Shown: positions 3,344-46,262 of the stretch, piece by piece
How positions within the stretch are numbered: the stretch's first letter is position 1
Layout of the letters: every line of letters begins with the position of its first letter
DNA from: Neoconidiobolus thromboides FSU 785
Taxonomy: Eukaryota > Fungi > Entomophthoromycota
Reading direction: 5' to 3'
Assembly: GCA_025603075.1 (NCBI GenBank)
Contig: MU626408.1
Span: forward strand, 1-47,720
Length of the DNA: 47,720 bases
Made by a program: the position numbers and the translations under genes
Notes under the pieces: model-generated
Databases searched by the model: none
Told to the model about the DNA's origin: nothing
Seen by the model: only the letters and a program-made list of their open reading frames with translations

Positions 3344-3447
3344 TATAGGAATGTATTTTTTTTGGTTAACAATTTTAATAACAGTTATTCTACTCAATAG
3401 CACTTGAAAAATGGAAAAAGTAGTGGAATCAAAAAAACATACTTATA
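3344..3447 (+). mobile_element. ~104-bp hairpin repeat/MITE-like element, copy A (degenerate)
   Basis: TA-TAGGAATGT...ACATACTTA-TA with core aatagcacttgaaaaatggaaaaagtag. Confidence 0.7.
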
Positions 3448-3913
3448 TCTGATATATTCTAATTATATCTATAAAACAAACTATTTCTATAATCAATTTT
3501 AATATTTTTAGAACTATCATTATTATTTGATTTATTTTTTATAGTTTCATAGCCAGTATAATTATTTAATAGCTTAATATTAATATTATTTATTAAGATT
3601 GCTTTTATAAAATCAATAGTACATATTTTAGTATATGATTTACAACTACTGTGAAATCTGGTACTTAATGGTTGGAATCAAAAGCAGTTTTTGCTTGATA
3701 GACTTGAATTATGAAGAATAGCAAATAATAGGCTATGGACTATATAAAACAAATAGAATAGACAATACTCCTGTAAAGCATACATAAAATACTACCAGAA
3801 AGATTAGTAATATATATTAAAATATTATTAATGTTTTTATATCCATTATACTCACCTTTTATTTGTTATAAAATTATTGTTAATATTTTAAAATATTAAA
3901 ATTTATAAGAGTA

Positions 3914-4010
3914 TATGGGGATACATTTGTTTAAGGATTTTACTATTAATCTTTCTGCTCAAATAGCGCTTAAAAATGGAAAAAGTAATGAACTCAAAAA
4001 AAATATTAAT
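3914..4010 (+). mobile_element. Hairpin repeat copy B
   Basis: tatggggatacatttgtttaagg...ctcaaatagcgcttaaaaatggaaaaagtaatgaa; right end decayed. Confidence 0.8.
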
Positions 4011-4174
4011 TTACTTTAAACAGTTTGTAAAAACAGTATTAGCTGATTCATAATTAAATAATAATAAACTTAATAGACAGTTGGTTATTTTAATTATATA
4101 ATTTTTTAAAATATTCTACTTTTTTATTATTTTATATCTTTTTTTAGCTTTTTTTATATAAATTTTAATTATTA

Positions 4175-4277
4175 TTTGGGGATGTGTTTTTTTGTTTAAG
4201 AATTTTACTGCAATCTTTCCACTCAAATAGCACTTAAAAAATGGAAAAATAATGAAACCAAAAAAAACAGTCTCATT
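4175..4277 (+). mobile_element. Hairpin repeat copy C
   Basis: tggggatgtg...ctttccactcaaatagcacttaaaaaatggaaaaataatgaaacc...acagtctca. Confidence 0.85.
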
Positions 4278-4600
4278 TTATTTTTAAATTATTATTGTAT
4301 TACTATTATAAGAATTAAAAAAGTCTAAATAGTAATAAGATAATTATTTAAATAAAAAGTATTTATAAAATAGAATATATAATTAGTTAATTTTTTCTAT
4401 GAAAATAATATCAAAACAATTTAAAAGTAAATAAAATAAGAGGTTTTTTATTTTAAAATTATATTTTCATAAAAAATAAAGAATTTACATGAGATTTAAC
4501 TAAAGTTTTAAAAAAATAATAATTCAAACTTTAGAAACTAATCATAGTAATAATTGGTCCGATTTTAGGCATTTTTATTGCCCAGTTTAATTTTTTAGTA

Positions 4601-4705
4601 AGTGGGGATGTTTTTTTCGATTTTATTACTTTTCCATTTTTTTAAGTGTTATTTGAGTGGAAAGTTCGTTAATAAAATTCTTAAACAAAAAAATATATCC
4701 CCAAG
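4601..4705 (-). mobile_element. Hairpin repeat copy D
   Basis: Reverse-orientation match: tggggatg...ttttccattttttaagtgttatttgagtggaaag...atatcccca. Confidence 0.85.
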
Positions 4706-4830
4706 TACTTTTTATTTAAATAATCATATTGTTACTATTTAGTCTCTTTCAAAAACAACTAAAAATTACATATTATTTAGTTATCAAAATTGCTTATAAA
4801 AACAATCATATTTCTAAGAAATTTATGATA

Positions 4831-4946
4831 CACTAGTAAAGATTTCAGATAGTCACTCTCAAAAATCGATTTATTTAGTAAAATACGATAAATTTTTACT
4901 AAATAAATCGATTTTTGAGAGTGACTATCTGAAATCTTTACTAGTG
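4831..4946. mobile_element. Perfect 116-bp foldback/MITE-like element (second family), TA-flanked
   Basis: 4828..4883 is the exact reverse complement of 4894..4949 (56 bp) with a 10-nt spacer; reads TA|CACTAGT...ACTAGTG|TA. Confidence 0.85.
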
Positions 4947-7494
4947 TATAATTTAAATATTAAGATGTGTGCAGAAATTTAAATTTAAATAATTTATATC
5001 TTATATTGACACATTACACTTTAACTTAAATTTATTTTTATTATTAAAGCCATAAAATGCAAAATTGTTATTGATCTGATTGATAGTTTTTATTAAAATC
5101 ATAAAGCATTCTAATATTAAAATTAATTTAACATTAAATAGACTTAAATATATATAAGATGTAATTTTAAATATAAAGAAGATAATGTAAATAAAAAATA
5201 ATAAAATCTCATTAACTTGATATATTATTAGAAGGCTTTATAATATATACGACAAAAAGAAATGAATGTGGTTAAACCTATTATTAAATTATTATTTATT
5301 TGTTTTTTGTCATAAAATTCTAATTTAATGTCTACCTTGAAAAATAGAATCATAAAATTAAAATATAAATGATATATATTTTATAAATTTATTCCAATAG
5401 TTTTTATTTATAGCTTTCTTTCATGCTTTACTAGGAAGTATTTACTAAATTATCAGATAATTTTTATAGTAAAACTTAAAACTGTGGTTTTATATCTTTA
5501 AAATAGTAAAAGGCTTAATGTTTTAAATGTTCACTTTTTTAATTAGCTATCAAAATAGTTCATTGATCCATTTTGTTTAAAATATTAGTTTTTGATTAAA
5601 AATGAAGATTTTATGATTATCTATATCTCAATTTTGTTAAATTTTATTTCTCTATTTATTGCAATTATTTACTCAGTTTAGCTCTAATGTTCTAAAGTAT
5701 TTAGGCTGAATGTAAAAAAAGATTATTTTAAATAAAGTTTTATCTTGTATATTCAATATGCATACATATTAAATATACAAATTAATTATAACAATAGTAC
5801 ATAAAATATCTATAAAAGAGATTGATTTAGGGTGTTAATCAAAAATAATAATTTTACTAAAATGTAATAATATGTGAGCTTAAGGTTCAACTAGAAACTA
5901 GTGCATTTCTAATTATACAAGAATTATTAAATTTTAATATGTATTTTGATAGCTTATTTAATATAAATAGATAAATAAAATATAAAATATTTAGATATTT
6001 TTAAACAATATAATAACTTAATCTTATTCTGCCTTTTATAAAATTAATTTTAGTTTAACCAAACCCTGTTTTTTGAAATGACGCTTAGTTTAAGTTGGCT
6101 GGGTTTTCTAAAGGTTGGGAGGTAAAATAAAATAAGATTCAGATAATCAATAAAGAGAAAGGAATCGAAGAATTGATTGGTTAACAGCTATTTTTAGGGA
6201 TCTAAATAAAAAAACAAGGAATAACTAAGGGGGGTTAAAATTAATTTAAACTCTTGTATTTTAAGGGGAAAAATACAACTATCTTTTTTTAAATCAAACT
6301 TATTTTTGTTTAATTTATTTTAATAGTACAAAATAAAACCAAATAAAACTATTATTTTAAAACTTTTGAAATTTTACTATCTAGTCTTCCCGAGATAGCC
6401 TCTTGATAAAGAATATGGCCTTATTCTAAACATTTAATTTATTATTAATTGTCCTTTAGTGTACTTATCAGTCTTATTTTTTACCATTTATTCTTTAAAA
6501 TCTAAAGGTTCTTTTTTTTAATTATTTGTTTCAGTTAATTCTTTAGTTTATTTATTTAAAAATAATGATAACACAAAAAGCAAAAAAAGTTATATTGTCG
6601 TCCATTGTATTATACTATAAAAAACTAGATTCTAAGAGTGAGTTTTAATGTTTATTAAATATTAACATTATTAATATGCTAATTAACAAATATTAATTTC
6701 AAATGAAATAAAATTAGTTCATGTTTAGAATTAAAAAACTTGATTCGAATATGTTTAAAATAATTTTAAACCAAATTAGAAGTTCCTTAGTAATAATATC
6801 AAACCAAAAGGTAGGGTAGGGTGTTCAAAGTAAAAAGGAAATAAGATGAAGTAAGGTTAAAAGTGAACCACGTTTTTATACTGAGAATGTATTAGATTTT
6901 AAAGAAAATTTGCAAAAATGATGTCATTTTATAAGCCCCTAATTTTTTAAATAAATTTAAAATCCAAATTATGGGGAGTCTTCAATATGAATAATTTATA
7001 AATATGGTCATTCATAGGCATAATGAAAGGTTAAAAATAACAGACAATTTCATCTTCTAAATCAAGATCAACCTAATCTATAAATTTATAAGTTACTTAG
7101 CCTTTGAAGAAAATTGGTAAAGAGATTAAGTGAAATTTTAACTATAAATTAATGCTAAGTTGAATTTCATGAGCATTAACTTTCTTTTTTATTTTGTAAA
7201 TTCAAAATTTATTTTATTTTATAACTCATATTTAAATATTTAAACTGGTTTTAAACGTCAAGTTTCTACTTTAATTTTATAACTAAGTGTATTATTATTT
7301 ATCACTCTTTTAAATTATTTAAGTGTATCATCAATACCCTTATCTTTGTTCTGCTTGTATAAGTGATAGTATATATACAACACATCTTTAGATAATTATT
7401 TTTTAAAAATAGTTTATGCTATATTGTTATATTAAAGTAGCATAGCATAATAGAATCGAAACTCAAGCGCAATATATAAACCTAAATTAACATA

Positions 7495-9036
7495 ATGTAT
7501 TTAAACAGTAATCCATTGCTTAACAATAATAATAATAATAATTTATTACCACCATCACAACCATTTATAAGATCGCAGTCTGATGCAGTTAACAATAATG
7601 ATAATTCATTAAACCTAGATATGGCTAAACAACAACAGCAAGAGAATTATGATAATAACAGTGGACTACGTATGAAGAGGTACAATTCATTGCCAGATGT
7701 AGCTGAATACTTGGATCCTAATCAGCAACCAACGAATAATATGATGAACAATAACAATTCAAATAACAATAATTCACAACAAATAAATTCTTTGATGGCA
7801 GCATTCAATCAGAATAATAAGTTATATGAGAAGAATTCAACTTATTTTAATACTCAGCATTTGACGAATAACCAAATTCAAAATCTTCACTTGCCTCAGA
7901 TCATTACTACCAATTCCAACAATCATTCTTCTAACTTAAACGTTAATCATTATGATCATAGTTTATCTTTACCTATGTCTGCTGGTTTACCAGTACCTTT
8001 GTCCGCAGGTTTATCTATGCCATTATCTGCAGGTTTATCAGTTCCATTATCTGCAGGTATGTCAGTATCTTCCCATGAAAGTGTTAATAATTTATCACAT
8101 CCATCTTCAGTACCACACTCGCCTATTTTTAATATTGAACAATATAGCAATAGTAATAATCAATCAAATAGTCATTTATTATTAAATGATAAATTACAAT
8201 CAAGAAGGTTACCTAATGAAGATAATCATTCACATCTCATAAATGAAATGGCTTATAGTCAAGGTTATACAGTGAATTACTCACATAATAACCCTACAAA
8301 TAGCAATAGTAATATAAGTCCAATGTCCCCTCATTTTCCAGCAAACCCATCGAATTATCAGCCTTACTATCAAGACAATTTAATGTTAAACAGCCAAATG
8401 AAAAGGGCAAAGATAGAAGATAACTTCAATAATACTTTATTCCAGCATGCTCATGTTAATAGTTATTTAAATCATCAACATCCTCATGGTCATCATGCCA
8501 ACAACAATCCTCACATGTATAGTATTAATGAATCTGGTATGCCAATGGCTATCCCTATTCAAAATGCTCCTGCTCCTGATGCTGCTACTGCCCAAGCTGC
8601 ACAAGAAGCCATCAACGCTTCTGCTCATCTTCCACCACCAACTGATGATAGCGACCCAGAAGCAGTACCACGCCGTCAACATTTAAGATATCCAGGGGAT
8701 TTATATACGCCCCAATGGGTGAGATTTGGGGGTCATAAAAAGGAAGGATATTGTGATTTATGTAGTCCAGGAAAATGGTTACAGTTAAAGAATAGTGCTT
8801 ATTGGTACCATAAACAATTCTATCATGGGATTTCCTCAGTATCCGGAAAATTCTTTTCAGGGCCTATTCAAACACGTCAAAAAGATGCTGAAGTTGTTGA
8901 AGGACTTTGTCATCAATGTCAACAATGGATCCAAATGTCATCTGCCAAAAGAAGAAATTCAGTGCTTTGGTTCCGCCATGCTCATAAATGCCATGTTTAT
9001 CATAAACCTAAATCCATCTTTGGTAAAAGGGTTTAA
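7495..9036 (+). CDS. Putative transcription regulator with Rua1/Meu26-type C-terminal domain and N/Q/H-rich N-terminus
   Basis: 513-aa intronless ORF; C-terminus DLYTPQWVR..KKEGYCDLCSPGKWLQLKNSAYWYHKQFYHGISS..EGLCHQC..WFRHAHKCH resembles the fungal Rua1_C (formerly DUF4451) domain. Confidence 0.8.
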   Translation: MYLNSNPLLNNNNNNNLLPPSQPFIRSQSDAVNNNDNSLNLDMAKQQQQENYDNNSGLRMKRYNSLPDVAEYLDPNQQPTNNMMNNNNSNNNNSQQINSLMAAFNQNNKLYEKNSTYFNTQHLTNNQIQNLHLPQIITTNSNNHSSNLNVNHYDHSLSLPMSAGLPVPLSAGLSMPLSAGLSVPLSAGMSVSSHESVNNLSHPSSVPHSPIFNIEQYSNSNNQSNSHLLLNDKLQSRRLPNEDNHSHLINEMAYSQGYTVNYSHNNPTNSNSNISPMSPHFPANPSNYQPYYQDNLMLNSQMKRAKIEDNFNNTLFQHAHVNSYLNHQHPHGHHANNNPHMYSINESGMPMAIPIQNAPAPDAATAQAAQEAINASAHLPPPTDDSDPEAVPRRQHLRYPGDLYTPQWVRFGGHKKEGYCDLCSPGKWLQLKNSAYWYHKQFYHGISSVSGKFFSGPIQTRQKDAEVVEGLCHQCQQWIQMSSAKRRNSVLWFRHAHKCHVYHKPKSIFGKRV

Positions 9037-9223
9037 AAAGCAAGGCAATTTTTCACAGATTATTTTTTAAAACAGGATTTTAGCTTTCTCCTTTCTTTTT
9101 TCTAGTGTATTTTATTTTAGATTTCAAAAATAAAAAATAAAATTTATTTATTAACTATTTGCTTTAATGACTAGTTTTATTTTAATATTTACTTCTCACA
9201 TATTAAAATCTATTAAATAGGTG

Positions 9224-9320
9224 TATGAGGATGTCTTTGGTTCCTTTCCTTTTTCCATTTTTGAGTGATAACTGAGTTCAAAAATATTGTAAATTTCTAA
9301 TAAAAAGGGACATCCCTACA
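9224..9320 (-). mobile_element. Hairpin repeat copy U (degenerate)
   Basis: tatgaggatgtctttggttcc...ttttccatttttgagtgata...gtaaatttctaa...acatcccta aligns to the reverse consensus. Confidence 0.65.
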
Positions 9321-9928
9321 TGATAAGTGTAATAATCTAAGGTCTTACTTTGACTTTATAAAAAGTGGGCAAAAAATAATATAATCAAAAAATAATCTTG
9401 ATCTAAAATAGACAGCATTTTTTAGCGTTAAGATTTTTTAAGGTAAAAAGCACTCTATTAGCATTTAATGAATTATTTTTAAATTGTACATGAATAGAAT
9501 AGAATAGATCATTTATACTTTTGTAAAAGTTATTGAGATTCATTTATATATTCCAAGTATAAAGTCACCTTAAGGGAGGACAGTAAAGTAAAAGACGCTT
9601 ATATAAATTTCCCCCATCGTTAATTTCTAATCCAGAGTAGTGATGTCATGATTAAAAAAGCGATTTAGAAGAATATCAAATTAACGATGGGTATAGAAAT
9701 TAACTTATTATTTAGCTCATTGACACATACAAAAAAGGAAAGTGGCCAACAATAGCATTCTTAATGATACTAAATTATTAGTAAGAAACAGAAGCATGAT
9801 TATTAATAAACCGGTTATTAGGAACATGAAGATGAAAACGTCATCAAACGAATACAAGGAAATAAAGTATAAATAAGAGATAAATTGATGAGATTTAATC
9901 TAATCTAATCAAAAATTTAGTTTTAAAA

Positions 9929-11008
9929 ATGTTTAGGAATACCTTTAAAGTGTTAAGACCCAACACTTCATTTAAAGCATTCGCTGCTAACAATGTAAAA
10001 GTAAGTCAAGTACTTACCCAAGGACCAAAATTCCGTTACTATTCCAGTGCCCCAAATGAAGAAAATAAAAGTGGTAACAATAATATATTAATTGGTACTT
10101 TGTTAGTAGCTGGTGCAGGCTTAGGGTATTACTTTTATGGTAGTGATTCAAGTAAGAAAAATTCACAATCCAAAGTAGAAAGCATAGACTATCAAAAAGT
10201 GTACAATCGTATTGCATCCATATTAGATAAGGACGAAGATTATGATGATGGCAGTTATGGACCACTCTTAGTCCGTTTAGCTTGGCACGCTTCTGGTACC
10301 TATGATCATAAAGCCAAGAATGGTGGATCATGTGGCGCAACTATGAGATATGAAGAAGGAAAGTGGGGAGCTAATAAAGGGCTTCAGATTGCACGTAGTC
10401 TTTTAGAGCCTATAAAGAAGGAATTCCCACAGATTACCTACTCTGATTTATGGACTTTAGGTGGTGTTGTTGCTGTTCAAGAAATGCAAGGACCAACTAT
10501 CCCATGGAGACCAGGCAGGTCCGATGATAAGCCTGAAAATGAAAGACCACCTGATGGAAGATTACCTGATGCTAGCCAAGGTGAACAACATGTTCGAGAT
10601 GTGTTTTATAGGATGGGATTCAATGACCAAGAGGCCGTTGCCTTAATTGGAGCCCATGCTTTAGGACGTTGTCACACTGATCGTTCTGGTTATGAAGGCC
10701 CATGGACCTTTTCACCCACTATGTTTACTAATGACTACTTTGTTAAATTATTAGAAGAAAAATGGGTACCTAAAAAATGGAACGGACCACATCAATATGA
10801 AGATAAAAGTAGTGGTAACTTAATGATGTTACCAGCAGATTTATCTTTGATTAAAGATAGTACCTTCCGTAAGTATGTCGAACTTTATGCTAAGGATGAA
10901 AACAAATTCTTTGATGCCTTCTCCAAAGCTTACTCAAGATTATTAGAATTAGGCTTTGATTTTGATGCTTCTAAAAAACCATTGGAGTTTAAGAGAGTTG
11001 CACAGTAA
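9929..11008 (+). CDS. CCP1: Mitochondrial cytochrome c peroxidase
   Basis: Presequence plus TM segment; distal motif [13 protein letters not shown]; proximal motif [24 protein letters not shown]; intronless. Confidence 0.95.
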
Positions 11009-11942
11009 AATATCTTTTCAATATTATTATCATAATAAAAAATAAGTTCTTATTTATTTATATTATTAACTTTTAATATCCGTAATGAATTTAGTACAAA
11101 CAAAAAAATTGTCAAAAAAATTTTCTAATAATGATAGAATTATACAGATTAAGATTTGAATGTTTCTGGTATAGTAAAATTTAAATTTAGAGTCAAGAAA
11201 TGATTTATACTAAACATTAGTTTAAACTCCAATGATTACTTAATTTTTGATATAAAAAACTTTGTTCTTTGAATCTTTCTTAAATATGTTGTGTTGACAT
11301 AGTATATCTAGCTAAATAATAGCTGTTAAGCATAGGACGGATTAATTGATCGGTAAAAAGAAGAATTCTTATTTATAAATCAAAACAGCTTAGGGCTAAA
11401 TTAGACAAATATTATAAAAATGTAAAATAGTTTCATCTATTTATTACATTCAAAAGTACAATATTTACAATATTTAAATTAAAGTCAAAGTCTCAAGTTA
11501 ATCTAAGTAATTATTTCTAAAAGTGACATCTCAATAAACATCTATATTTTTTTACAGTTGGAAATTTATACTACATAAAATTTTAAAGTACTAAGAACTG
11601 GTTGTTTGTAAAATTATATTTTCCCAAAATCAATATTGCTATGTTAAAATAAAAATAGTTATTCTGAGTTTATAAAGTATCTAAAATAAATTTTGATATT
11701 TAATATCATAAATTGTTATGTGTTAAACGAAAAGTAGTTTATAGTTATATATCACTAACTTAATTTTCTATGTGAAAATTACTTTTTTTAAATTAAATAG
11801 TTTAGAATTAAAAATCATAAAAATGAAAAAGATGAAAACATTTTTAGATATTTGATAAAAACTTTGAAATAAAAAATGTCTATTAAGTATTATAGCTGTA
11901 AAAATGAATTAAAGGTTAACTAAAATGTATAATGAGTTAAAA

Positions 11943-12045
11943 TATGGAGACGTATTTTTTTGTTCAAGAATTTTACTAACAATCTTTCCACTCAAATAGC
12001 GCTTAAAAATGGAAAAAGTGATGAAATCAAAAAAACGTCCCCGTA
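11943..12045 (+). mobile_element. Hairpin repeat copy E
   Basis: tatggagacgt...ttttactaacaatctttccactcaaatagcgcttaaaaatggaaaaagtg...acgtccccgta. Confidence 0.9.
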
Positions 12046-12648
12046 CTTTCTTTTATAATTTTGCAATCTAATACTATTTTTCATTTAATATTTTGTTTGC
12101 TTTTTATATAACATAAAAATTGAAAAATATTAAATTCTAAACAAAAAAGACCTGCTTGAAATAAAACTAAAGCTGCTTCTAGATGACCAAATCTGATTCA
12201 AGATTGTTTTACAGCTCCTTCAACTCTATTGTGACCTAATTTGAAGTAATCTTTAAAGCTAGCTAACTTTTTATTTGGCTTTTTTAAACCTAATCTTTAG
12301 ATTTTAATCTAACTTTAGTAAAATTTTACTCTAAAATGAACAGTTACTTAGATCACAACAGAATCATAGCAGCTGTAGGCTTAAAATCATAAGTTAATGA
12401 TAATCTCATACTTGGAAATTGAAAGTTTGTAAACAAAGTTAAAATCAAACTATTTAAAATCTTTATATAGAAAAATCGAATGAACAAAAAATAAAGAGGT
12501 CAAAGCAGATAGATCCCAGTTTTTAATTATTGAATTATTTTTAGAAGCCTGATTATAAAAACCAAAAAGGTGACTGTTTTTTATGATAGTGGAATAAAAA
12601 TGATTCTACATAAGAGTAAAAATAATGTAGGTCATTGCAAATATAGAG

Positions 12649-12744
12649 CCAATGAAAGCAAGTTAGGAAAAGAGTGCCAATAATGAGAATAAAAAATTCA
12701 AGGTTGATCAAATCAAATAAAAATATTCTTTAGAGAAGGCCAAT
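12649..12744 (+). promoter_or_regulatory. Three CCAAT boxes upstream of the Yippee-like gene
   Basis: gagCCAATga (12649), gtgCCAATaa (12677), aggCCAATga (12740), 100-200 bp before ATG 12846. Confidence 0.45.
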
Positions 12745-12845: not shown

Positions 12846-13473
12846 ATGGGTCAGATTTACAGACAATATTTATCCGGATCAAAGGTGTTTGCCTGCAGTG
12901 GGTGCAATACTCATTTGACTACAGTTGACCTTATAGTTTCAAAGGCAAGCATTAGTTGATACTTTTAGTATAATAATTACTATAGCTTGACGGAATCTAA
13001 TATTAACTTTGAAAAATAAATCAAACGAAATCGTATTAACAATTAGTTTTTAGGCCTTTCAAGGACAACATGGACAAGCTTATCTATTTAAGAAAGTGTA
13101 AGTTTTATACTTATTTCATTATTATACTATAGATATTTCTTTAAAATAACTTTTTTATCAATATTTTATGAATATTAACTGTTTTTTAAAGGGTAAACGT
13201 GGATTTTGGAGAAGCTGCTGATCGCCATATGACCACAGGACTACATACTGTTAGAGACATTGTTTGTAATACTTGTGGAGAAGTATTAGGTTGGAGTTAT
13301 GTAAGTATATTAATTATCCTAAATAGTATTAGTGCTATTACATTCTACTTAATACTATAAAAAAATATGATTTACTTATGCTTAAATTTTAGATTAAGGC
13401 ATACGAAGAGTCACAGAAGTATAAAGAGGGAATGTTTATTCTTGAAAAGCAACTTTTAACCACAATAAATTAA
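12846..13473 (+). CDS. Yippee/MOH1-family zinc-binding protein, 4 exons; not in the ORF track
   Basis: Spliced: [33 protein letters not shown]|[15 protein letters not shown]|[36 protein letters not shown]|[26 protein letters not shown]. Confidence 0.93.
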
Positions 13474-14341
13474 AGGTTAGAAATAGAATGCTAATAGAAT
13501 ACGCATATTTGGCGTTAGACATTACCACTATAATTGCATCTATTCGTATTCAATAATTTAAGTCACTAATTTCTTCATTTTACTCTAGTTTATCATCTTA
13601 ACTCATCTGTACTCTTTATTATAGGAATTAATATCATTTCCTCTTTTGTTCTCCTTGTTTCGTATCATTTGAACCTTACCCTCCTGCTTTTATGACATCA
13701 TAAAGTACACACTTTTTCACAAATGCAGCATGGATTAATTCTTTTTTTTACATACAATTAAATTAAGCCTTTATTATGCATTTATATACTATATAATTAA
13801 GTTCGAAGGAGTTGATATCTCAATTTATTACATATACTATTACTTAATTAAAATCTAACTATTATACTAAATTAATTAACATTATTCTTAACAGTTTTGA
13901 TTTTATTATTAGCCCGAAAAATTATAATTACCTAATAAATTAAATAAATCTGTAACCCAAAAAATACAATTACTGTAGCTAATATATATAGATTACAGTT
14001 AACAAAGGCTTAAACTAGCTCATATTATACTATAACAAAAACACAATTCTTCAAGCTATTGTTGAATATTTAGAAAAGAGTAATTTATTTATATATAAAC
14101 TTTTGCTCATAAGAGCTTAGTAAATAATGAATTTCTTTAAGCTTTTAATATGGAAGAAATAAGTTAACTGTTGAATTTAGCATCAAAAATTATACTTATA
14201 TTTTTAAATATTATTTAAATCTATGGATTAAACTAAAAAAGATACATGTTTTACAACAACATAAAATTCTTGCTTTATTTTTAATTTTCTATCTGTTATT
14301 TGATAAGCAACCAAGGCAATTATAATAAAGAAAAATGAAAA

Positions 14342-14445
14342 TATGGGGATATATTTTTGTATTTAAGAATTTTACTAACAATTTTTCCACGTAAATAGCG
14401 CTTAAAAGATGGAAAAAGTAATGAAGAAAAAAAAACATCCCCATA
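14342..14445 (+). mobile_element. Hairpin repeat copy F (near consensus)
   Basis: TA-TGGGGATAT...tagcgcttaaaagatggaaaaagtaatgaag...ACATCCCCA-TA. Confidence 0.9.
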
Positions 14446-14513
14446 TGTTAGCATATTTTTAGGCTTATCTAATCGCAAACTGTCAAATAATTTATTTAAA
14501 GGAAATTGACTGG

Positions 14514-14585
14514 GGAGGGTTGGCGTATTGATTTAACGCTAAATCTTCAGCTACCCAGGTCTCTAGTTCGAATTCATTCAATCTT
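14514..14585 (+). pseudogene. Highly decayed tRNA-like sequence
   Basis: Paired D-arm TG-GCGT-ATTGATTTA-ACGC and B-box-like AGGTCTCTAGTTCGAATTC at tRNA-like spacing; anticodon and acceptor stems do not pair. Confidence 0.4.
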
Positions 14586-14788
14586 GATCTAAGATAGTGA
14601 AGAGGTTTAATCAATTGTTACTCCGCTGTGGAAACTTTAGATTATGCTCAATAGAAATCTTGATGATAACAACTCGTCTTGTACATACCTTTGGTTATTT
14701 GTAAATATTTCTTTATTGAATTACATGTTCAAAAGAGGAAAAAGAGACACAAATGCATTCAAATTATTTATATTCTAATAAAACTTAC

Positions 14789-14890
14789 TATGGGATGTAT
14801 CCTTTTGCTTAATAATCCTACTAACAATCTTTCCACTCAAATAACGCTTAAAAATTGGAAAAATAATGAAACTAGAAAAACACCTTCCTA
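14789..14890 (+). mobile_element. Hairpin repeat copy G
   Basis: tatgggatgtat...ctactaacaatctttccactcaaataacgcttaaaaattggaaaaataatgaaac. Confidence 0.8.
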
Positions 14891-14902
14891 CATTGAGGAA
14901 TA

Positions 14903-14964
14903 GCGTATGTAGTATAGCGGTAGAATACCTGGCTACCATAGGAGAGATCTGGATCCAAGCTCCC
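14903..14964 (+). pseudogene. tRNA-Gly-like pseudogene (anticodon reads ACC)
   Basis: GCGTATG-TA-GTAT-AGCGGTA-GAAT-A-CCTGG-CT ACC AT-[CC]AGG; T-arm decayed and 3' acceptor strand missing. Confidence 0.6.
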
Positions 14965-15174
14965 TTTCGAAAAGCTCAAAGTTTATAAATATTATATTCT
15001 CTATATTTTAAAAAGAACTCAGGTCATCACAATTTGTTAATATTTATAATTACTACCATTTCAAATAAAGTTTGCTCTATAAAATAACAAAATACAAATC
15101 AAATGTTATGTGAAACGGAAAACAAATAGCAAGGAAATAAAAAACAGATGGATTTAGCAAAACATTTCAATGTA

Positions 15175-15276
15175 TATGGTGATATATTTTTGTATTTAAG
15201 AATTTTACTAATAATCTTTCCGCTGAAATAGCGCCTAAAAATGGAAAAGTAATGAAACCGAAAAAATATCCCCATG
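15175..15276 (+). mobile_element. Hairpin repeat copy H
   Basis: tatggtgatat...ctttccgctgaaatagcgcctaaaaatggaaaagtaatgaaacc...atatcccca. Confidence 0.88.
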
Positions 15277-15469
15277 TATTTATTGTAACTGAGTACTAGA
15301 CCATACCAGTTGAAATTAACTAAATAATGATAATGTGATACTAAATGGAAGTATATAAAGCTAAAATCGTTATCAACAATTATAAACAAGACCATTTCAA
15401 ATTTTGTAAAATTTATATAGCGTTATTTATTAATAAAGACATGAAAAAGATAGAACGATAACAGTAAAA

Positions 15470-17039: not shown

Positions 17040-17733
17040 TTGATGCAATTTAAGTAAAAAATTTAATTTTACAAGATTCCATTGTTTCTCTTATATATTG
17101 TTGTTTCGTTGTGCATGTTTACTTCAATTTATTTAAAGAATTTGTTGTTGATGAGCGTGATTTTTTTTTATTACTATTTCTAGTCAGCGTGTGAATAATA
17201 GTTATCATTTGATGATAATTTGATTGGAGAACTGTTTTGGGCAAGCTAATTTGATTGATATTTTATGTAAGATTATCTAAATCCCTTATTAAATATATTG
17301 ACAATAGTGTATGACTATTCTATTTTAATTCATATAAATAATCATACTATTCCTTACTTTAAAATATTTATAAGTACTATAACTTGATCAGTGCTTATTA
17401 AAATAGTATAAAACTTCTTATGGTTTATCTTTATTTTATTTAAAAGTTCACTTGCCTTTTAATTTTTTAAATCACGATTAAACTGATTTTTTGATCATAA
17501 ATTTGAAGTTCTTGATAATAAATGCCAACTCAATGCTCATTCTAATTTTGGCAACTTGAATAGTATATTTGTGGTGATTCCATCATTCTGTCTATTAGAG
17601 GAGCTTCACAAGTTGTTTTATAGCTCTACTATTATATATGTTTCGATTTTATCCTTTCAACTTTCAAGGCTGAGGTGCCTTTCATGTGAGATAAAAAAGA
17701 GCAAAGTGTTTATAAATCTTTTGTATATAAGGA

Positions 17734-17836
17734 TATGGGGATGTATTTTTGCGTTTAAGAATTTTACTAACAGTTTTCCCACTCAAATAGTGCTTAAAAA
17801 AGGGAAAAAGAATGAAACTAAAAAAACAGCCCCATA
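17734..17836 (+). mobile_element. Hairpin repeat copy I
   Basis: TA-TGGGGATGT...ttttactaacagttttcccactcaaatagtgctt...ACAGCCCCA-TA. Confidence 0.9.
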
Positions 17837-17993
17837 TTGTTTTTATTCGAAAGCCGTTTAAAATAAAATATTCCTTTAAAGTCTTAAAGCTTTGATATCT
17901 ATAAATAATCATTTTAAATTAACTATAAAGCTAAACAATAAATGTCTAGAGATAAAGAATCTGCATTGAAAAATGATATCTCACAATATAATA

Positions 17994-18097
17994 TATGGGG
18001 ATGCATTTCCTTGTTTAAGGATTTACTTGGAATCTTTCTGCTCAAATAGTACTTAAAAGATGGAAAAAAGGATGAAGCCAAAAAAAACATGTTTATA
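17994..18097 (+). mobile_element. Hairpin repeat copy J (first unit of a tandem dimer)
   Basis: tatggggatgc...ctttctgctcaaatagtacttaaaagatggaaaa...acatgtttata. Confidence 0.85.
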
Positions 18098-18199
18098 TTG
18101 AGATGTATTTTTATGTTCAAGAATTTTACTAATAATTTTTCTGCTCAAATAATGCTTGAAAGATGGAAAAAGTAATGAAGCCAAAAAAACATCCCCATA
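18096..18199 (+). mobile_element. Hairpin repeat copy K (shares TA 18096-18097 with J)
   Basis: tattgagatgt...ttctgctcaaataatgcttgaaagatggaaaaagtaatgaagcc...acatccccata. Confidence 0.88.
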
Positions 18200-18616
18200 T
18201 AGTGATTTAGCACATCAATGTTTAAGAGTAACGTTTAATAGTTAGTACATAATTCAGCTAATAATAACATTTTTTCCACTTTGGTTAGATTTGATTTTTT
18301 AAAATGTTTAAAACAGTATCTTTTAAATGGAGATTCATATCAACTTTCATGGTTCATAATGCTAACCAGCTTAAAATAACACGAATGTTTTTAGCTCTGG
18401 TTGTCTTTGAATTGCTTTTTATTTAAATGGTATTCAATCTCTTTTGATATTTTTTATCTTCAAAATCTTCAAAAATAATACAACACTAATCTTAATAGCT
18501 TTAAAAAATTCACTATTCATACCAAGTTTAACAATTGTAAATAGTTATAAATGCTATTGCTTCTGAAGCTAAGACTTATTTATTGGAAGACATTTTATGG
18601 CTCCAACAAATAATGT

Positions 18617-18718
18617 TCTGAAGGTATTTTTATGTTTGAAAATTTTACTAACAATTTTTCTGCTCAAATAGTGCTTAAAAGATGAAAAAAGTGATGAAGC
18701 CAAAAAAATATCTCCTGT
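18617..18718 (+). mobile_element. Hairpin repeat copy L
   Basis: ttttactaacaatttttctgctcaaatagtgcttaaaagatgaaaaaagtgatgaagcc; ends decayed. Confidence 0.8.
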
Positions 18719-19391
18719 CATTTCCTAAATCGAAATTTTAATTCAACTTATATCTAGAATAGGTATATTGAGTTGAAGGATATACTTTTAGATGGTATAA
18801 ATTTAATCTAAGGACTTGGTCTAGGTAGAAAGGTTTAAGTTTTAATAATAAAGGTTAACATATTGTAAATATAACTGTAGTACAATGATTATGTTATAAA
18901 GTTTATATTCGTTTATTTCAAATTAAAGCTAGAGTAAATAATAATATTGAATCAAAATGTTTAATGTCAAAGCTATTATTAACATAAAGATTTGTAAAAC
19001 ACCCAAATGTAAGTAATTGAAAGCTATAAATAATTAGTTTATATATTGCAAAACTAAAAGTGTTTTAAAAAATTAATACTGACACGAAATATACCGAGCA
19101 AAATATACGCCATATGCAATAATACTGTTTTGAACCTCATTTTTTGATAGATTTTTAAATAGATACTTTCTGTAAACAAACTTAATATTATTTAAAATTA
19201 TCTTTTGGAGTCCAACAATAAAAGTATATATGTTTGCGAAAACAGCTGATTAAATATATATTTATGAGGTATAAAAGGTGTTGTTGTAAGGCCCTAAATA
19301 AATGATGTTTCGATATCCTTACTGGGCAAAACATTTATTATGGGTAAGAGACATAATTTAGAAAAGCCCATTAAAGTTGACTTTTAGCTCT

Positions 19392-20145
19392 TTAGATGAG
19401 CTCCATATGAGTGTGGATTGGGAATTCAAATACAGCATCTTTACCAGTAAGTTTCTTGTAAACAGCTCCAAAAGTATCTAATTTATGTTCTTGAGAAGTG
19501 GTATCTTTGGTGTCAAGGAAACTAAGAAAAATTAAAATCTTATAAAAAAATAATAGAAGGTAATATTTACACTTTGATAAGACGAGATCCATCAACTTTG
19601 TGCTTGATACGTTTACCAACAATTTCAGTTGGGTAAGCGAGATCTTCAAGAATAGCGTCATGGACGGCAGTTAAAGTACGAGAGCGTGGGCGTGGTTGTT
19701 TAGTTGAGGTCTTACGGGATGGTTTTGGAAGAATACGACGTTGAGCAACAAAGAGAACATGACGATCGGAGAATTTCTTTTCGAGTTCACGAGTTAAACT
19801 GAATTGGTTGTTAAAAAAAAATCCAATTACAAAAGATAAAACTTACCGAACTTGAACTTTGTTGAATTGCTTCTTGAGAGGGATTGGGAAGAAAATTACA
19901 ATAGCGAATCTTCCAGCTCCAATTTCAATCTTAATTTAAAACTGTAAATACTTATGAACAAACTCTAAAAGAATTGAAAATCTATTTTTAATTACCTCTT
20001 TAGCAGTGTTAATTTGAAGAGGACGAAGGTCTTTTTTAAGTTCTGGGTTGTTTTTTTCAAGGTCAATGAGAGCTTGAGCAACGTTGAGCTCGAGTTCAGT
20101 AGCCTTAACGTCAGCGGCCTTTACGATCTTGTGTTCTGCAGACAT
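19392..20145 (-). CDS. RPS7: 40S ribosomal protein S7 (eS7), multi-exon
   Basis: [38 protein letters not shown]..; [10 protein letters not shown]; [22 protein letters not shown]. Confidence 0.97.
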
Positions 20146-23183: not shown

Positions 23184-23314
23184 TATTTATAAACTTTACT
23201 ATTTATTTTTTCATTAAATTTTCATTTTTGTTATAAGCTTTTTTATTTTTCTAATTAAAAAGGAAGTTTTTTGTTTCTATTTTCATTTTTATTAGATATA
23301 GTAATAATTGAGTA

Positions 23315-23418
23315 TATGGAGATTTTTTTTTGGTTTCATCACTTTTTCTATCTTTTAAGCGCCATTTGAGCAGAAAAATTATTAATAAAATCCTTAAACA
23401 CAAAAATGTATCCCCATA
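23315..23418 (-). mobile_element. Hairpin repeat copy M
   Basis: TA-TGGAGAT...ttttaagcgccatttgagcagaaaaatt...ATCCCCA-TA. Confidence 0.88.
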
Positions 23419-23620
23419 TATTGTAAACAATATTATAGTATCAATATAAGCCAGTGCTAAAATAACTTTTTTATTGTATTAATAATATTTCATATTTTAA
23501 TTATAATTATCTCAAAACTACGCAGTTCTAAATTGAGCAATTTGAGAATAAACTGTGCAGAAAAATTGAATATAAAATATCATCAAAAACATAAATAATT
23601 TTTATCTATTAAATTTAAAA

Positions 23621-35422: not shown

Positions 35423-35645
35423 TTCTTATTTTTGAGGAACAAAAAGTAGTTCTAATACATAAAGCTTTTTAATTATTATTGCTACAATATTCAATCAATT
35501 GATTTAATAAATGAACTAGAGAACGGATAGCTATATAAAGTAATTTTCAATTTTTTGGTTTAAAACATAGTAAACATCTCAAGTACATTGTTCATTTTTA
35601 ACTACCTTAATATTTACAAATGTTTATTTAGCTTAGAAAAAAATA

Positions 35646-35749
35646 TATGGGGTTGTATTTTTGTATTTAAGAATTTTACTAACAAATTTTCCGCTTAAAC
35701 AGTGCTTAAAAATGAAAAAGGTAATGAAGTCGAAAAAAACACTCCTATA
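35646..35749 (+). mobile_element. Hairpin repeat copy N
   Basis: TA-TGGGGTTGT...ttttccgcttaaacagtgcttaaaaatg...ACACTCCTA-TA. Confidence 0.88.
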
Positions 35750-35821
35750 TAGAGATATCTCTTAAGAATTTAACATTTTTTCACCTAATGATGCTTAAAA
35801 GATGGAAAAAATACCTTCATA
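35748..35821 (+). mobile_element. Hairpin repeat copy O (internally deleted, shares TA with N)
   Basis: tatagagatat..ttaagaattt..atgcttaaaagatggaaaaaataccttcata. Confidence 0.7.
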
Positions 35822-35837
35822 AGGGAGGGTATGTATG

Positions 35838-35910
35838 TGCCTTCTATCGGAATCGAACCAATGACCTTCCGCTTACTAGGCGGACGCTCTGCCAACTGAG
35901 CCAAGAAGGC
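35838..35910 (-). tRNA. tRNA-Thr(AGT), copy 3
   Basis: Identical 73 nt to copies 1 and 2; upstream flank unrelated. Confidence 0.97.
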
Positions 35911-36029
35911 GCTTATTCCTCGTGAACATTAAAATTAGTATTTAATTCAAATAACTTCTCAGGTTATAATTTAATTTATTAGGTTCAAAATAGCTGCACC
36001 CAAATGAACAAATTTGTATATCTATAAAA

Positions 36030-36131
36030 TATGGTAATATATTTTTGTGTTTAAGAATCTTACTAGTAATTTTCGATTCAAATAGCGCTTAAAAGACAGA
36101 AAAAGTGATGAAGCCAAAAAACACCTCCATA
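36030..36131 (+). mobile_element. Hairpin repeat copy P
   Basis: tatggtaatat...caaatagcgcttaaaagacagaaaaagtgatgaagcc..acacctccata. Confidence 0.85.
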
Positions 36132-36434
36132 TGCCCCCTTCGTACTGTACTATTAGGTAATTGTCAACGGATATCCTATGCTATTGGCTTACATTTAGAC
36201 TGTATCAAATTATTTGAATTCAATATAAGAGAAGAATTGTTTATTTTTATATTTGTTTTTTATCGAACCTTATAACTATTTGAACTGGACTACAAGCCTA
36301 TAGTCCACATAAAAGTAAGCATTTTCAACTAAAGTTTAACGAAGAGATTAATATAGACCTTATTATTATTTTGTTTTCCGAGTATTTGTTAAAGACAGTA
36401 AGTGTTATACCATTAGGTATTTAAAAGAAGGATA

Positions 36435-36538
36435 TATGGGAGTGTTTTTTTTGACTTCATTATTTTTCCATTTTTTAAGCGCTGTTTAAGCGGAAAATTT
36501 GTTAGTAAAACTCTTAAACATTAAAATACATCCCCATA
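36435..36538 (-). mobile_element. Hairpin repeat copy Q
   Basis: TA-TGGGAGTGT...ttaagcgctgtttaagcggaaaatttgttagtaaaa...ACATCCCCA-TA. Confidence 0.9.
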
Positions 36539-37203
36539 TAGAGTAACAAATTAATTATTCATTTAAATCTATGAGTAGAAAAAAATACAGAAACAGTTAA
36601 ACATCAGATATATAAAATATGTAAGTAAGATAACTAATACGAAATCACATCGAGAAGAGGGATAGTATAGTATTAGTTCAATGACTAAAATGAAATATTT
36701 TCTATTATTCTCCAACTTTTACTTAATTTCAAACTTGTTTTCTATCTAATTAAAATAGTTATATTGAACTTGAAGGCTACTTAAACTAAAACTATTTATT
36801 AACTGAGACTAGTATCAAATTAGGCCCCTAACTATATGATTTATTTTAGTATTGGTATGTTAATTCAATACGTTGAATTTATTTAAGGAATAAACAACTC
36901 AATCAAATTAAATCTGAAAAGTATATTAAACTAGGCTGAAAAAATGGTTGACTTGAAAGCTGTCTTTATTTATGAGTTTCAAAAATCAATATTAATTTGT
37001 CAAACTCTATTTCTACTCTTAAACGAATATATTTCTTGGTATTTATAATGTTTGTCAAATAAAACGTAAATTACAAAATAAAATATTTATTAAAAAATGT
37101 AACGTAAATTTAAACAGTTAAGTATCTTTTTTTAAGTATAATAGGTTAGAGGAGTCAAAATATAAGGTAGCCCCTGGGCAGTATATTGTAAGTTAGAAAT
37201 AAA

Positions 37204-42758: not shown

Positions 42759-43358
42759 TTTTATAAAGTGTACAACACTTTTTACTTATATGCCACCATA
42801 AAATTTATTCTGAGATGATTATTTTAATAAACAGTAGTAAACTACACCACTTTTCATGACTAGTTTTTTATAATGTTTTATAATACACAAATAAAACTTT
42901 ATGGTTTAGCGACTTTGGATTGATTCATAATATTAAGTAAACCAATGTCGTATATATCGTGTAAAATATCTGAAAAGACGGTACTTGAAGTAAACTATAA
43001 TCAAGGTATGCTGATATAGAAATAAATATAATAAACATGCATTCGTATAAATATTTTTAACTAAATACTTTCAAAATTAAAAATAAACTGTGAGAGCCTA
43101 CTTATTACCAAAATGTGCTTATTTAATTGCCTCATATAACTCATGATATTCAAACAATAAACTTAATTATACTTAGTACTCCTAAATTTATTTTATAAAA
43201 GACACTTACTTGGACAAATCTGATTATTTTTCAAAAATATACTAAATAAATAATTAAATAATTAAAGAATAACATATTATAACATGAGTAAAATAAAAAG
43301 AGATTATATTAAAGTAAAAGGAGATAATCTAACATTTTTTAAAAGCACGATTTTAAAA

Positions 43359-44575
43359 TTACCCAATAAGTCTTCGATATTCATCACATTTTGGTAATCT
43401 TCTGCTTCTTAATTCTTTCAGCCTTTTTTCATTTCTATTCCAACCAAACCAGCCAGTTGCTTCAGCAATTTCGCTATTTAATCTATCCCTCTGGTTAATA
43501 CATTGTTGATAAACTGATCTGACATAATACGATTCCACATCCTTTTCAAATTGATTAAATCTCTGCTTATTTGCCTTAGATTTAAAGGTAAGCATCTCTT
43601 TAGGATCAGCGTAATAAGTAATTCCCCTTGATTGAGTATTATAACTTTTAGTAAACCTAGGTGCCCTTTCGAATGTATAGTCAGGCTCTCTTAAGTTAGC
43701 TGGTGTAAATAAAGTTGAAAAGAGTGAAAAAACTAGTAATAAAAGAATGGGAAGTAACTGAATAAGGTTAAAATTGGTTTCAAATTGGGTAGTATTAGCT
43801 CTAGGTTGTTGACGATTTCTACGCATATATTGACGTCCATCTGGTCCCACAAACGTACTATGAAATCCAGGGCCGAAATTTGAAGCCCCAAAAAACATAT
43901 TAAATAACTCTTCAGGACTTACTTCTTCTTGATACCTAAATCCTGGATTATATTGTGGTCCGGAATTACGTTGCTCAGGATCTCCGCCGTATCTATCATA
44001 AGCTGATTTCTTGTCAGGATCTGACAGTACTGAAAACGCTTTGCTAACAACTATAAAAGATTTAAGCATTTATTCCAACTGTTTTTTAAATAATATTACG
44101 TTTAAAGGCCTCGTCTGCTCCTGGGGCGCTATTTTTATCTGGATGGAATTTTAAAGCTAACTAATAACAAGGTGAATTATAGTTCAGATAAAGAAAAGTT
44201 CCTTACTTTTTTATATGCCTTTTTAATTTCGTTTTCAGTGGCTTCTTTAGTTATCCTGAGTATCTTATAAAAATCTCCTGAATTTCGCTTGATTTCAATG
44301 ACTTCTTCCACTTGCTCTTTTGTATAAGCTCTACTACTTGAATTACTATTGCTCATTTTTACACTTTCCTTTTCTTGTTTAATTTCAACTTTTACTTTTT
44401 CTGGGCTTTCTTTACTTTTTGGCTCAATAATTTTCAAATATTGTTTGGCTTGGTCGGTTGGAAATAAAGCAATGGATTTGCGACAAAACTTTAACGCTGA
44501 AGAATAATCTCCTTGTTGCTCTTTCTTTTTAGCAATGGCTAAACATCTTATTGCTTCGTCTTTGTTTACCTCCAT
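43359..44575 (-). CDS. DnaJ co-chaperone, DNAJB12/14 (Hlj1-like) with TM segment and DUF1977-like C-terminus, 3 exons
   Basis: MEVNKDEAIRCLAIA; DFYKILR..IKKAYKK|LALKFHPDKNSAPGADEAFK|..SKAFSVLSDPDKKSAYDRYG; VSPEELFNMFFG; QLLPILLLLVFSLF. Confidence 0.9.
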
Positions 44576-45695
44576 TTTATATTTTGTTGACAATTTTGAT
44601 TATTTAAATTAAATCTCTATTTTTCACCTTAAATTGTTTTCTTTTTTAGCTTTATGAATAGCCAATTAACCTTGATCTTTCTAGTTCTTCACAATCCTCT
44701 GGGAGGCTATTATTGGCTTCAATTTATGTTGAGTTTTTAATTTTGTCGAAAGTGGAATTAAGTGATTGGTTTATTTCATTTTATATTTTGTATTAATAAA
44801 ACTAAGTTTATTTTGCACATCGTCAAAGCGTTTGGCATGTTTTAGAATACAGAAGGATGCCATTTTTATTACTTAGTGGCAAACATTATTTGTCACCAAG
44901 TGATGGACTGCTGATGAAGGATAGAAAATTTATGTTTTAAAGATCTTATTAGCATTTAACCACATAATTTTCACCACACTATATCTATCTCAAAAGACAA
45001 TTTAGCGAATTACTGAAATTATTTCTGACAATAGAAAAATGAATGGCCAAAAATTTAAATACTATAAAAATTAGTATGTTCCAACAATAAAATGATCAAC
45101 TTTGTATCAAGGTTTTATATTTTATTTACTTTCATCAATTATAAAATAAATTTTATGGTGATTTATTGAAATTTACTCAAGATGGCTGTGATGGGATGAA
45201 AATCTTATACTAAATGCTTAAAAATAAAACACTAAAAGACATTTTGAACATCTATTATAGAATAAACAATTTTATCAACTAGATGCAGGGTTAATATAAT
45301 GTTTATAAATACTCAAAATAAGTTGTAACTCTAGCAGTAAAAGCCTGGTAAATTCAAAAACTGACATAAACAGCTTAGCTGGATTATGAAATAAATCTAG
45401 GATTTTAAATAATAAACTTATATATAAATGTCAAAAATACTATCACCCAAAATTGGACCCAACACCAGTAAAGTTCCTAGTAAAAAGCCATTTACATATA
45501 TGAATTATTTTATTAGTTTTTTAAATAAAAATCTATCCAAGTTTAGACTAGTCCTAAATACAAGCTTAAGAGAAATACTATTACTTTCAAATGATTATTA
45601 TTATTCACAAAATAAAATGTATAAAGCAACTATTTAGATAAAGCTAAATTTAAACATGAGTTTTTATTCCCTAATATTCATTTTATATTGTAAAA

Positions 45696-45794
45696 CATTG
45701 GAGATATTTTTTGGTTTCATTATTTTTCCATTTTTAAACACTATTTGAGTGGAAAGATTGTTAGTAAAATTCTTAAACAAAATGCAGCCTCATT
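45696..45794 (-). mobile_element. Hairpin repeat copy R
   Basis: ttggagatattttttggtttcattatttttccattttt..ctatttgagtggaaagattgttagtaaaattcttaaac. Confidence 0.85.
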
Positions 45795-45809
45795 TATAAA
45801 TGACAAATA

Positions 45810-45907
45810 TATGGGGATATGCTTTTGTATTTAAGAATTTTACTAACAACTTTCCACTCAAATAGTGCTTAAAAAATAAAAAAATAAACCAAAAAAACAC
45901 CCCCAAT
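45810..45907 (+). mobile_element. Hairpin repeat copy S (head-to-head with R)
   Basis: tatggggatat..ttttactaacaactttccactcaaatagtgctt...acacccccca-like end. Confidence 0.85.
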
Positions 45908-46157
45908 CGTTGATTAATTTTTTTGAAAATACATTACTATACATCTAATAGTCATAATATACAATTATAGCTGTTGCTATATTTTTGTAGATAATATTTT
46001 GATGTGGAATATAAAAATGCTTTTTAATATAATATCTTTTTTTTAAGTTAATTATAAAATCATCTTTTTAATAAAGTTGTTAATATATATATAAGTATCT
46101 TATATAACTTATATAATTGTATTTCTTATCAGTTTTGCATATTCTGTAGTTTGTTTA

Positions 46158-46262
46158 TACGGGGGTGTTTTTTTTGGTTTCACTACTTTTTCCATTTTTT
46201 AAGTGTTATTTGAGTGAAAAAATTGTTAGTAAAATTCTTAAATACAAAAATACATCCCCGTA
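46158..46262 (-). mobile_element. Hairpin repeat copy T
   Basis: TA-CGGGGGTGT...ttgagtgaaaaaattgttagtaaaattcttaaatac...ACATCCCCG-TA. Confidence 0.9.

Follow-up and report, generated by a model that had tools for sequence, protein, structure and literature searches.

The DNA analysed here, called the window below, is the complete scaffold MU626408.1 (47,720 bases) of assembly GCA_025603075.1 from Neoconidiobolus thromboides FSU 785, a fungus pathogenic to insects. The window has a GC content of ∼27% and carries genes for cytochrome c peroxidase, a Rua1-like regulator, a DnaJ protein, NFACT/Rqc2, a protein kinase, ribosomal protein S7e, saccharopine dehydrogenase and a PLAA/Doa1-like WD40-PFU-PUL protein, as well as an MFS transporter that is an NCBI-named protein of the same strain. 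Short introns of 46, 51 and 54 nt were confirmed by RNA contigs, and an Rfam scan of the window had three matches, all of them to tRNA-Thr(AGU). Given these ordinary eukaryotic genes, short introns and tRNA genes, the window is a part of the fungal nuclear genome, neither prokaryotic nor organellar. Between its genes lie numerous copies of a short repeat, which is the subject of this work and which we characterize as a MITE (miniature inverted-repeat transposable element).

About 21 copies of the repeat, in both orientations, had been predicted from the letters of the window alone (the original prediction). All 21 proved to be real (Table 1). The left 36 nt of the consensus proposed at that time matched the window six times with at most three mismatches (zero matches expected), and repeat finding produced families of 11–14 copies at the same places. 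A nhmmer profile built from 10 copies had 19 matches with E ≤ 4e-13, on both strands, along with a weak copy at 9224–9317 (minus strand, E = 8e-6) and a partial one at 35762–35812 (E = 0.003). The window copies align as a single family, in which columns are on average 78% identical; every copy differs from every other. Four further pieces of the N. thromboides genome (designated L002, L003, L004 and L006), reached via MFS paralogues and a transposase fossil, added 16 copies, so that with the window 36 copies are found in 133 kb on five scaffolds (0.27 per kb). The window is the densest of the five loci, with 0.42 copies per kb.

Table 1. Copies of the MITE in the window; coordinates include the flanking target bases
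Feature	Coordinates	Strand	Element and remarks
MITE copy	3343..3448	+	element 3347-3444; flanks ATAT/ATAT; diverged, K2P 0.21
MITE copy	3913..4014	+	element 3917-4010; degenerate right end
MITE copy	4174..4278	+	element 4178-4274; perfect non-consensus duplication ATTT/ATTT
MITE copy	4600..4706	-	element 4604-4702; perfect non-consensus duplication ACTT/ACTT
MITE copy, old, strongly diverged	9223..9321	-	element 9227-9317; ∼190 nt after Rua1-like ORF; E = 8e-6
MITE copy	11942..12046	+	element 11946-12042; flanks ATAT/GTAC
MITE copy	14341..14446	+	element 14345-14442; flanks ATAT/ATAT; near consensus; thousands of contigs of other genomic copies align exactly from 14341
MITE copy	14787..14893	+	element 14791-14889; ends diverged
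MITE copy	15174..15277	+	element 15178-15273; flanks ATAT/ATGT; 44 nt past 3′ end of MFS transporter gene
MITE copy	17733..17837	+	element 17737-17833; flanks ATAT/ATAT
MITE copy, most diverged	17993..18098	+	element 17997-18094; K2P 0.29; right ATAT common to next copy
MITE copy	18095..18200	+	element 18099-18196; flanks ATAT/ATAT; sits in ATAT flank of preceding copy
MITE copy	18614..18719	+	element 18618-18715; left terminus degenerate
MITE copy	23314..23419	-	element 23318-23415; flanks ATAT/ATAT; ∼130 nt after DnaJ ORF
MITE copy	35645..35750	+	element 35649-35746; flanks ATAT/ATAT; right ATAT common to following partial copy
Partial MITE copy	35751..35812	+	internal deletion, 3′-truncated; adjoins tRNA-Thr(AGU) 35837-35910
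MITE copy	36029..36132	+	element 36033-36128; flanks ATAT/ATAT
MITE copy	36434..36539	-	element 36438-36535; flanks ATAT/ATAT
MITE copy	45696..45795	-	element 45700-45791; flanks AAAT/AATG
MITE copy	45809..45908	+	element 45813-45904; small internal deletion
MITE copy, youngest-looking	46157..46263	-	element 46161-46259; K2P 0.054; flanks ATAC/GTAT

Anchoring the copies on their termini showed that the element proper runs GGGGATGT...ACATCCCC (GGGG...CCCC) and has a length of 96–99 bp, mostly 98 bp; the unit of ∼104 bp originally described takes in flanking target bases. The terminal inverted repeats (TIRs) are imperfect and extend over ∼20 bp, with arms GGGG(A)TGT(A/T)TTTTTG(T)GTTT inverted at the two ends. 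Inward of these ∼20 nt the arms resemble each other only in patches interrupted by indels. Open reading frames (ORFs) that cross copies are short and absent from some of the copies.

Perfect 4-bp direct repeats were observed at 17 of the 29 well-preserved copies. Thirteen of these pairs are ATAT, two are ATTT (window 4178 and L006 16862), one is ACTT (window 4604–4702) and one is TAAT (L006 4185); GTAT/GTAT flanks L002:4948, a copy outside the set of 29. When right flanks were permuted among the copies, none of 10,000 permutations reached the observed number of non-ATAT perfect pairs. The members of each of two tandem pairs (17997/18099 and 35649/35751) have a single ATAT in common, the arrangement expected when an element inserts into the ATAT that flanks an older one. 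The target duplication of the MITE is 4 bp long, AT-rich and usually ATAT, rather than the dinucleotide TA that had been proposed originally.

With a TA duplication the repeat would belong to the Stowaway-like MITEs of the Tc1/mariner/pogo group, as an element TGGGG...CCCCA with termini TGGGGATGT...ACATCCCCA, and the outer A and T would reflect an ATAT-like target preference. Most copies have A-TA-T on both sides, which is expected under that assumption as well; the ACTT/ACTT and ATTT/ATTT pairs can be read as duplications of CT and TT, and copy 46161–46259 has complementary changes (C...G) at the would-be ends of the terminal repeats. Still, perfect pairs with CT or TT in the center break the TA specificity, since they demonstrate that TA is not obligatory at the center, while the TAAT/TAAT and GTAT/GTAT pairs are not producible by duplication of TA beside fixed T...A element ends and would need extra mutations. 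No Tc1/mariner domain is present in the window ORFs, no transposase of Tc1/mariner or pogo type was seen in the window or in the five loci as a whole, and the end that the 3′ arm of the MITE does match belongs to a Sola2 element (see below). The 4-bp duplication, the perfect non-TA pairs and the Sola2-type DDD transposase as partner in the genome make the Tc1/mariner origin that was originally considered very improbable.

The statement that no transposase is in view holds for the window; transposase remains were detected in two of the additional loci. The first fossil, L004:6771–7956 (scaffold MU626315.1), occupies a stretch without called genes and consists of ORF pieces (6771–7064, 7114–7758 and 7762–7956) interrupted by one frameshift and two stop codons. 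Its best homologue (83% identity), a hypothetical protein of N. thromboides from another scaffold, led to the second fossil, L006:10233–11901, which is 89.6% identical to the first over 1,627 nt. The next named homologues belong to Furculomyces boomerangus and Smittium angustum, both zoopagomycetes.

An exhaustive search with the 215-aa transposase core produced 906 homologues, 373 of which had E ≤ 1e-10. Residues D21, D105 and D147 as well as the HGK motif are kept in at least 90% of the rows in an alignment of 35 family members. The AlphaFold model of the core is confident (predicted local distance difference test, pLDDT, 91.4) and has an RNase H-like fold. Its structure matches were mainly retroviral integrase catalytic cores, RNase H domains of reverse transcriptases and terminase nucleases, with the IstA transposase lower; TM-scores were low, so that the core has no close solved relative. 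No Pfam model matched the fossils, and the cluster names of 30 homologues are nearly all ‘hypothetical’. A 190-aa ORF (L004:7189–7761) falls, in the protein atlas, among clusters with the Pfam label DUF7869; the model of the best-scoring cluster (not of the 190-aa ORF itself) has structural neighbors that include bacterial DDE transposases. DUF7869 itself had a weak match in just one of the 35 homologues, and a literature search on DUF7869 found nothing.

Bao, Jurka and Kapitonov reportedly described the Sola superfamily, with its DDD transposase, in 2009. Comparison of the fossils with the published sequences Sola2_DFa-2 and Sola2_PPa-1 revealed five collinear blocks of motifs in the same order (fossil/published: RSTFFKYIPS/RSTFYKFVPS, TDLCNIC/TDTCPYC, IILDFKQN/VLMDFKEN, LNHDSGY/LNHCSSY, IWADTGSHFRS/FWSDGAKHFKS and HHGKSIVDGHF/YHGKSDVDRHF). 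Within the 86-kb protein file of PMC3627910 the strings DFKEN, HGKS and VLNHC occur only in the Sola2_DFa-2 and Sola2_PPa-1 entries. For two dictyostelids, Dictyostelium fasciculatum and Polysphondylium pallidum, Bao and Jurka described Sola2 elements with 4-bp AWWT duplications, namely ATAT, AAAT and ATTT (PMC3627910), and the supplement of the same paper gives Sola2 ends of the type GAG...CTC, beside AAAT.

The right ends of both fossils read TGGATAAAATAAT(G/A)AAACTAATTCAGACAACCCC and are followed by ATAT, beyond which the two loci diverge. We compared the right-terminal 42 nt of the MITE with all non-MITE end positions of the five loci on both strands (256,252 positions); ranks 1 and 2 were taken by the right ends of the two Sola2 fossils. 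Nearly the entire MITE is collinear with the final 100 nt of the L004 fossil (66 of 94 positions identical), and none of 2,000 shuffles scored as well. Looking for a transposase-bearing element with the ends of the MITE, a check advised by the original prediction, thus led to a match of the right arm with two Sola2 ends. Judged by these sequences, the MITE resembles the 3′ terminal part of a Sola2 element: its body would be collinear with the last ∼90 nt of that element, and the inverted terminal repeat would serve as a cap. Insertion would follow a cut-and-paste mechanism and target four AT-rich bases, usually ATAT, that would then be duplicated on both sides, and mobilization in trans would be provided by the Sola2-type DDD transposase. 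Very probably, then, the repeat, a 98-bp non-coding MITE with a 4-bp duplication, was mobilized in trans by a transposase of this type; we infer that the copies would have been moved by the Sola2 enzyme and by no other.

Alternatively, a MITE with a 4-bp duplication could have been moved by some other or unknown transposase, with the resemblance to Sola2 being secondary; for example, a degenerate MITE could have been situated beside the fossils before their duplication. The bases beside the two fossils do agree (ATTT at the left, ATATATT at the right), and both may stem from the duplication of a single segment with a MITE remnant already at its end, and the profile E-value of the fossil end is weak. 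Such a history is quite improbable given that the match is collinear, ends exactly at CCCC plus ATAT and is top-ranked in 133 kb, and that a 4-bp AWWT duplication combined with G-rich/C-rich ends is the published Sola2 signature.

Several observations weigh against mobilization by Sola2. The Sola2 identity of the fossils comes from by-eye comparison of motifs with published sequences, not from a computed alignment. Taken alone, nhmmer gave E = 0.1–0.8 for the fossil end against the MITE profile after composition correction; the weight of the link between MITE and fossils therefore rests on rank, register and position. The flanks ATAC/GTAT and ATAT/GTAC of two copies fit neither the 4-bp model nor the TA model cleanly. 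None of the Sola2 copies seen in the five loci is full-length with both termini. Both fossils begin at the same internal point (ATTT followed by ACTAAATG), without roughly the first 200 codons, so that the comparison with the MITE covers the right terminus. Finally, no empty site was found: among the joints listed for seven sites in DNA run X6, none skips a copy precisely.

The surroundings of the fossils have features of their own. At L004 a complete MITE (6662–6757) is followed, after 11 nt, by the broken 5′-truncated Sola2 transposase and the Sola2 right end. The segment L004:6662–8454 as a whole is flanked by perfect ATAT/ATAT, and the MITE alone by ATAT/ATTT; the L006 fossil starts exactly at the point corresponding to the MITE end of L004, but lacks the MITE. 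The L004 segment may have moved as one composite or be what is left of a donor site; the use of a MITE end to move a piece of the transposase gene is a further, unlikely possibility. Outside N. thromboides, the named sequence most closely related to the transposase resides in F. boomerangus MBFT01000140.1, where TAAGGGCAAC or its complement recurs in inverted pairs (∼2449–2469, 5027–5047 and 5195–5225); to judge from their letters these may be ends of related elements, in a locus too fragmented for element ends to be read.

The size of the family was estimated from contigs of two DNA runs of this species aligned on window positions 13400–19399 (6 kb). A total of 9,575 contigs of one run and 13,234 of the other aligned, nearly all of them from other genomic copies. 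Their similarity to the window starts at 14341 and 17733 and stops at 18200/18201, i.e. it covers the ATAT-element-ATAT span, while their loose flanks are unrelated AT-rich sequence (agreement ∼0.47). The depth summed over copies was 40,000–160,000 per 200-nt bin as compared with ∼47 where the DNA is unique, so that the copies must number in the thousands; per position, copies close to the consensus draw ∼7,000–12,000 copy-equivalents by a rough count. Multiplying 0.27 copies per kb by a genome size of ∼25 Mb (the contig set of run X3) gives ∼6,000–7,000 copies, also roughly. The family has several thousand copies and makes up ∼2–3% of the genome, as a rough estimate. In being short and non-coding, with imperfect TIRs of ∼20 bp, target duplications and thousands of dispersed copies in unrelated flanks, the repeat agrees with the MITE interpretation put forward in the original prediction.

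No other dispersed repeat families were found in the 112 kb compared. Scanning metagenome contigs for the MITE core produced no match, and one 21-kb locus of Entomophthora muscae had no MITE copy, a sample too small to conclude from. The third-best match to the right arm of the MITE outside recognized copies, L002:8900–8942 (GGATGGACAACAAAATGAAACAAAAAAGCCACTC), is by its sequence probably a degraded MITE remnant.

Kimura two-parameter (K2P) divergence of the copies from the consensus ranges from 0.05 to 0.29 (median 0.136), with four transitions per transversion, and the two transposase fossils differ by 10%. In run X6, the DNA of which shows scattered substitutions relative to the window, at least five of the seven copies examined occupy the same sites, as seen from contigs that end inside copies from both sides. 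The spread of K2P values, the absence of identical copies, the occupancy in run X6 and the divergence of the fossils point to an old burst or several bursts, with no sign of current activity, and the family appears to be no longer active.

The original prediction placed all copies between genes. We confirmed this for the annotated stretches, where none of 23 copies overlaps a gene span though genes take up 40% of the sequence (P = 7e-6). ATAT occurs 9–12 times per kb inside genes and 11–16 times per kb outside; being nearly as frequent in genes, the target is not in short supply there and its supply does not explain the exclusion. The exclusion likely reflects selection against genic insertions.

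The predicted ability of the unit to fold into one long hairpin was seen in the consensus, which does so with −23.7 kcal/mol as RNA. The original prediction considered, besides a MITE, a family of structured small RNAs or cruciform DNA; the nested hairpin would then be kept by selection, with mobility secondary or absent. The energy of the consensus hairpin, the copies that outperform shuffled sequences (z down to −3.0) and the 1,127 contigs of RNA run X2 that carry the repeat are all in line with this possibility. Among single copies, however, the advantage over shuffles varies (z from −1.0 to −3.0, several only about −1), RNAalifold found no consensus structure for 20 copies and no Rfam family matched the MITE in the window scan. 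Pairing was counted in the profile alignment of 28 copies (32 pairs, 832 cells). Watson–Crick pairs fill 640 of 832 cells (77%) versus a mean of 644 in shuffles, with 771 of 1,000 shuffles of the 3′ letters among copies reaching 640; compensated cells number 9 versus 7–19 with slid partners. As there is no excess of paired or compensated cells, the two arms mutate independently.

The RNA data point in the same direction, as do the two orientations of the copies: the depth in run X2, whose library type would not show small RNAs, is per copy-equivalent roughly 1% of that of the neighboring MFS mRNA. Unique intergenic DNA nearby has zero depth, so that MITE copies are present in transcripts; their low depth fits passengers of longer transcripts. 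A role as selected RNA or DNA structure is extremely improbable, and the fold comes from the ancestral sequence rather than being kept by selection. The nested inner stems arise from the nature of the element, which in its full length is an old imperfect palindrome, and the unit would fold back as a whole owing to its ancestry, a Sola2 3′ region capped by an inverted terminal repeat. Co-option of the hairpins genome-wide, e.g. as a source of hairpin-derived small RNA or as shared 3′-end or regulatory modules, is worth mentioning because about one copy is present per 3–4 kb, beside gene ends and carried in many transcripts; we consider it unlikely.

A few other observations were made in the window. 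The three tRNA-Thr(AGU) genes (regions 342–486, 2803–2947 and 35837–35910) are identical; two of the units form a 145-nt inverted repeat (94% complementary) that flanks the saccharopine dehydrogenase gene, and the third is located between MITE copies. Directly 3′ of the first gene, at 476–505, is TGGAGATATATTTTTTTTCCATGG, which looks like the left terminus of the MITE fused to the inner TTTTTCCA block and is missing 3′ of both other tRNA-Thr copies. By its letters this may be a heavily deleted MITE remnant, or chance.

The MFS transporter gene (15320–17039, minus strand) has three introns of 46–54 nt. Its closest paralogue, 78% identical (L002:10001–11419, scaffold MU626264.1), is one uninterrupted ORF, and a diverged intronless copy from the DNA runs, weakly present in RNA, aligns on the window gene; the intronless copy is a candidate retrogene. 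The NFACT/Rqc2 gene (24186–27378, plus strand) is made of three long ORFs separated by gaps of ∼60–75 nt, presumably short introns. At 17433–17700, run X6 has two versions of the sequence, each at about half depth (26 and 22 versus 48) and one with many substitutions and small deletions, which suggests that the sample is heterozygous or mixed.

Among known systems the family is closest to Sola2. The AT-rich 4-bp duplication is common to both, as are short TIRs with a G-rich triplet at the start and its complement at the end (GGGG...CCCC here, GAG...CTC in the published elements), and the fossils of this genome share the DDD triad in addition to the five motif blocks with Sola2_DFa-2 and Sola2_PPa-1. 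Unlike described Sola2 elements, those reported here are 98-bp non-coding derivatives with thousands of copies in a zoopagomycete host; no Fanzor or other passenger gene was seen and only broken, 5′-truncated copies of the transposase were found. Stowaway-like (Tc1/mariner-derived) MITEs, of which mimp of Fusarium is an example, are likewise short, AT-rich, palindromic, non-autonomous and abundant, lie near genes and mostly have TA-centered flanks; the N. thromboides family differs from them in its 4-bp, not strictly TA, duplication and in its Sola2 partner. In Epichloe, 13 MITE families together constitute almost 1% of the genome (PMC3227409). Those MITEs are also abundant, degenerate and intergenic, and are accompanied by relics of parent elements, whereas here one family, of another superfamily, reaches ∼0.27 copies per kb, roughly 2–3% of ∼25 Mb.

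A survey of fungi published in 2017 found Sola2 essentially absent, with one case in Aspergillus flavus, and stated that Pfam has no model for Sola (PMC5751038). Our literature search for a MITE in N. thromboides or for Sola2 in Zoopagomycota found nothing beyond this survey. By comparison with the literature only, the family is a new member and a new fungal host record of a known kind, the rare Sola2 transposons, and not a new kind of system.

The analysis thus corrects the superfamily and documents, in a fungus, a clean case of a Sola2 transposon together with a burst of MITEs. Since the best named homologues of the transposase are found in Furculomyces and Smittium, the Sola2 group may be an overlooked component of the genomes of early-diverging fungi. 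The family also matters for the annotation and assembly of genomes such as that of N. thromboides: assemblies break at MITE copies, as do the contigs of strain run X6, which break inside copies from both sides, and this one 98-bp family accounts for roughly 2–3% of a compact genome of ∼25 Mb.

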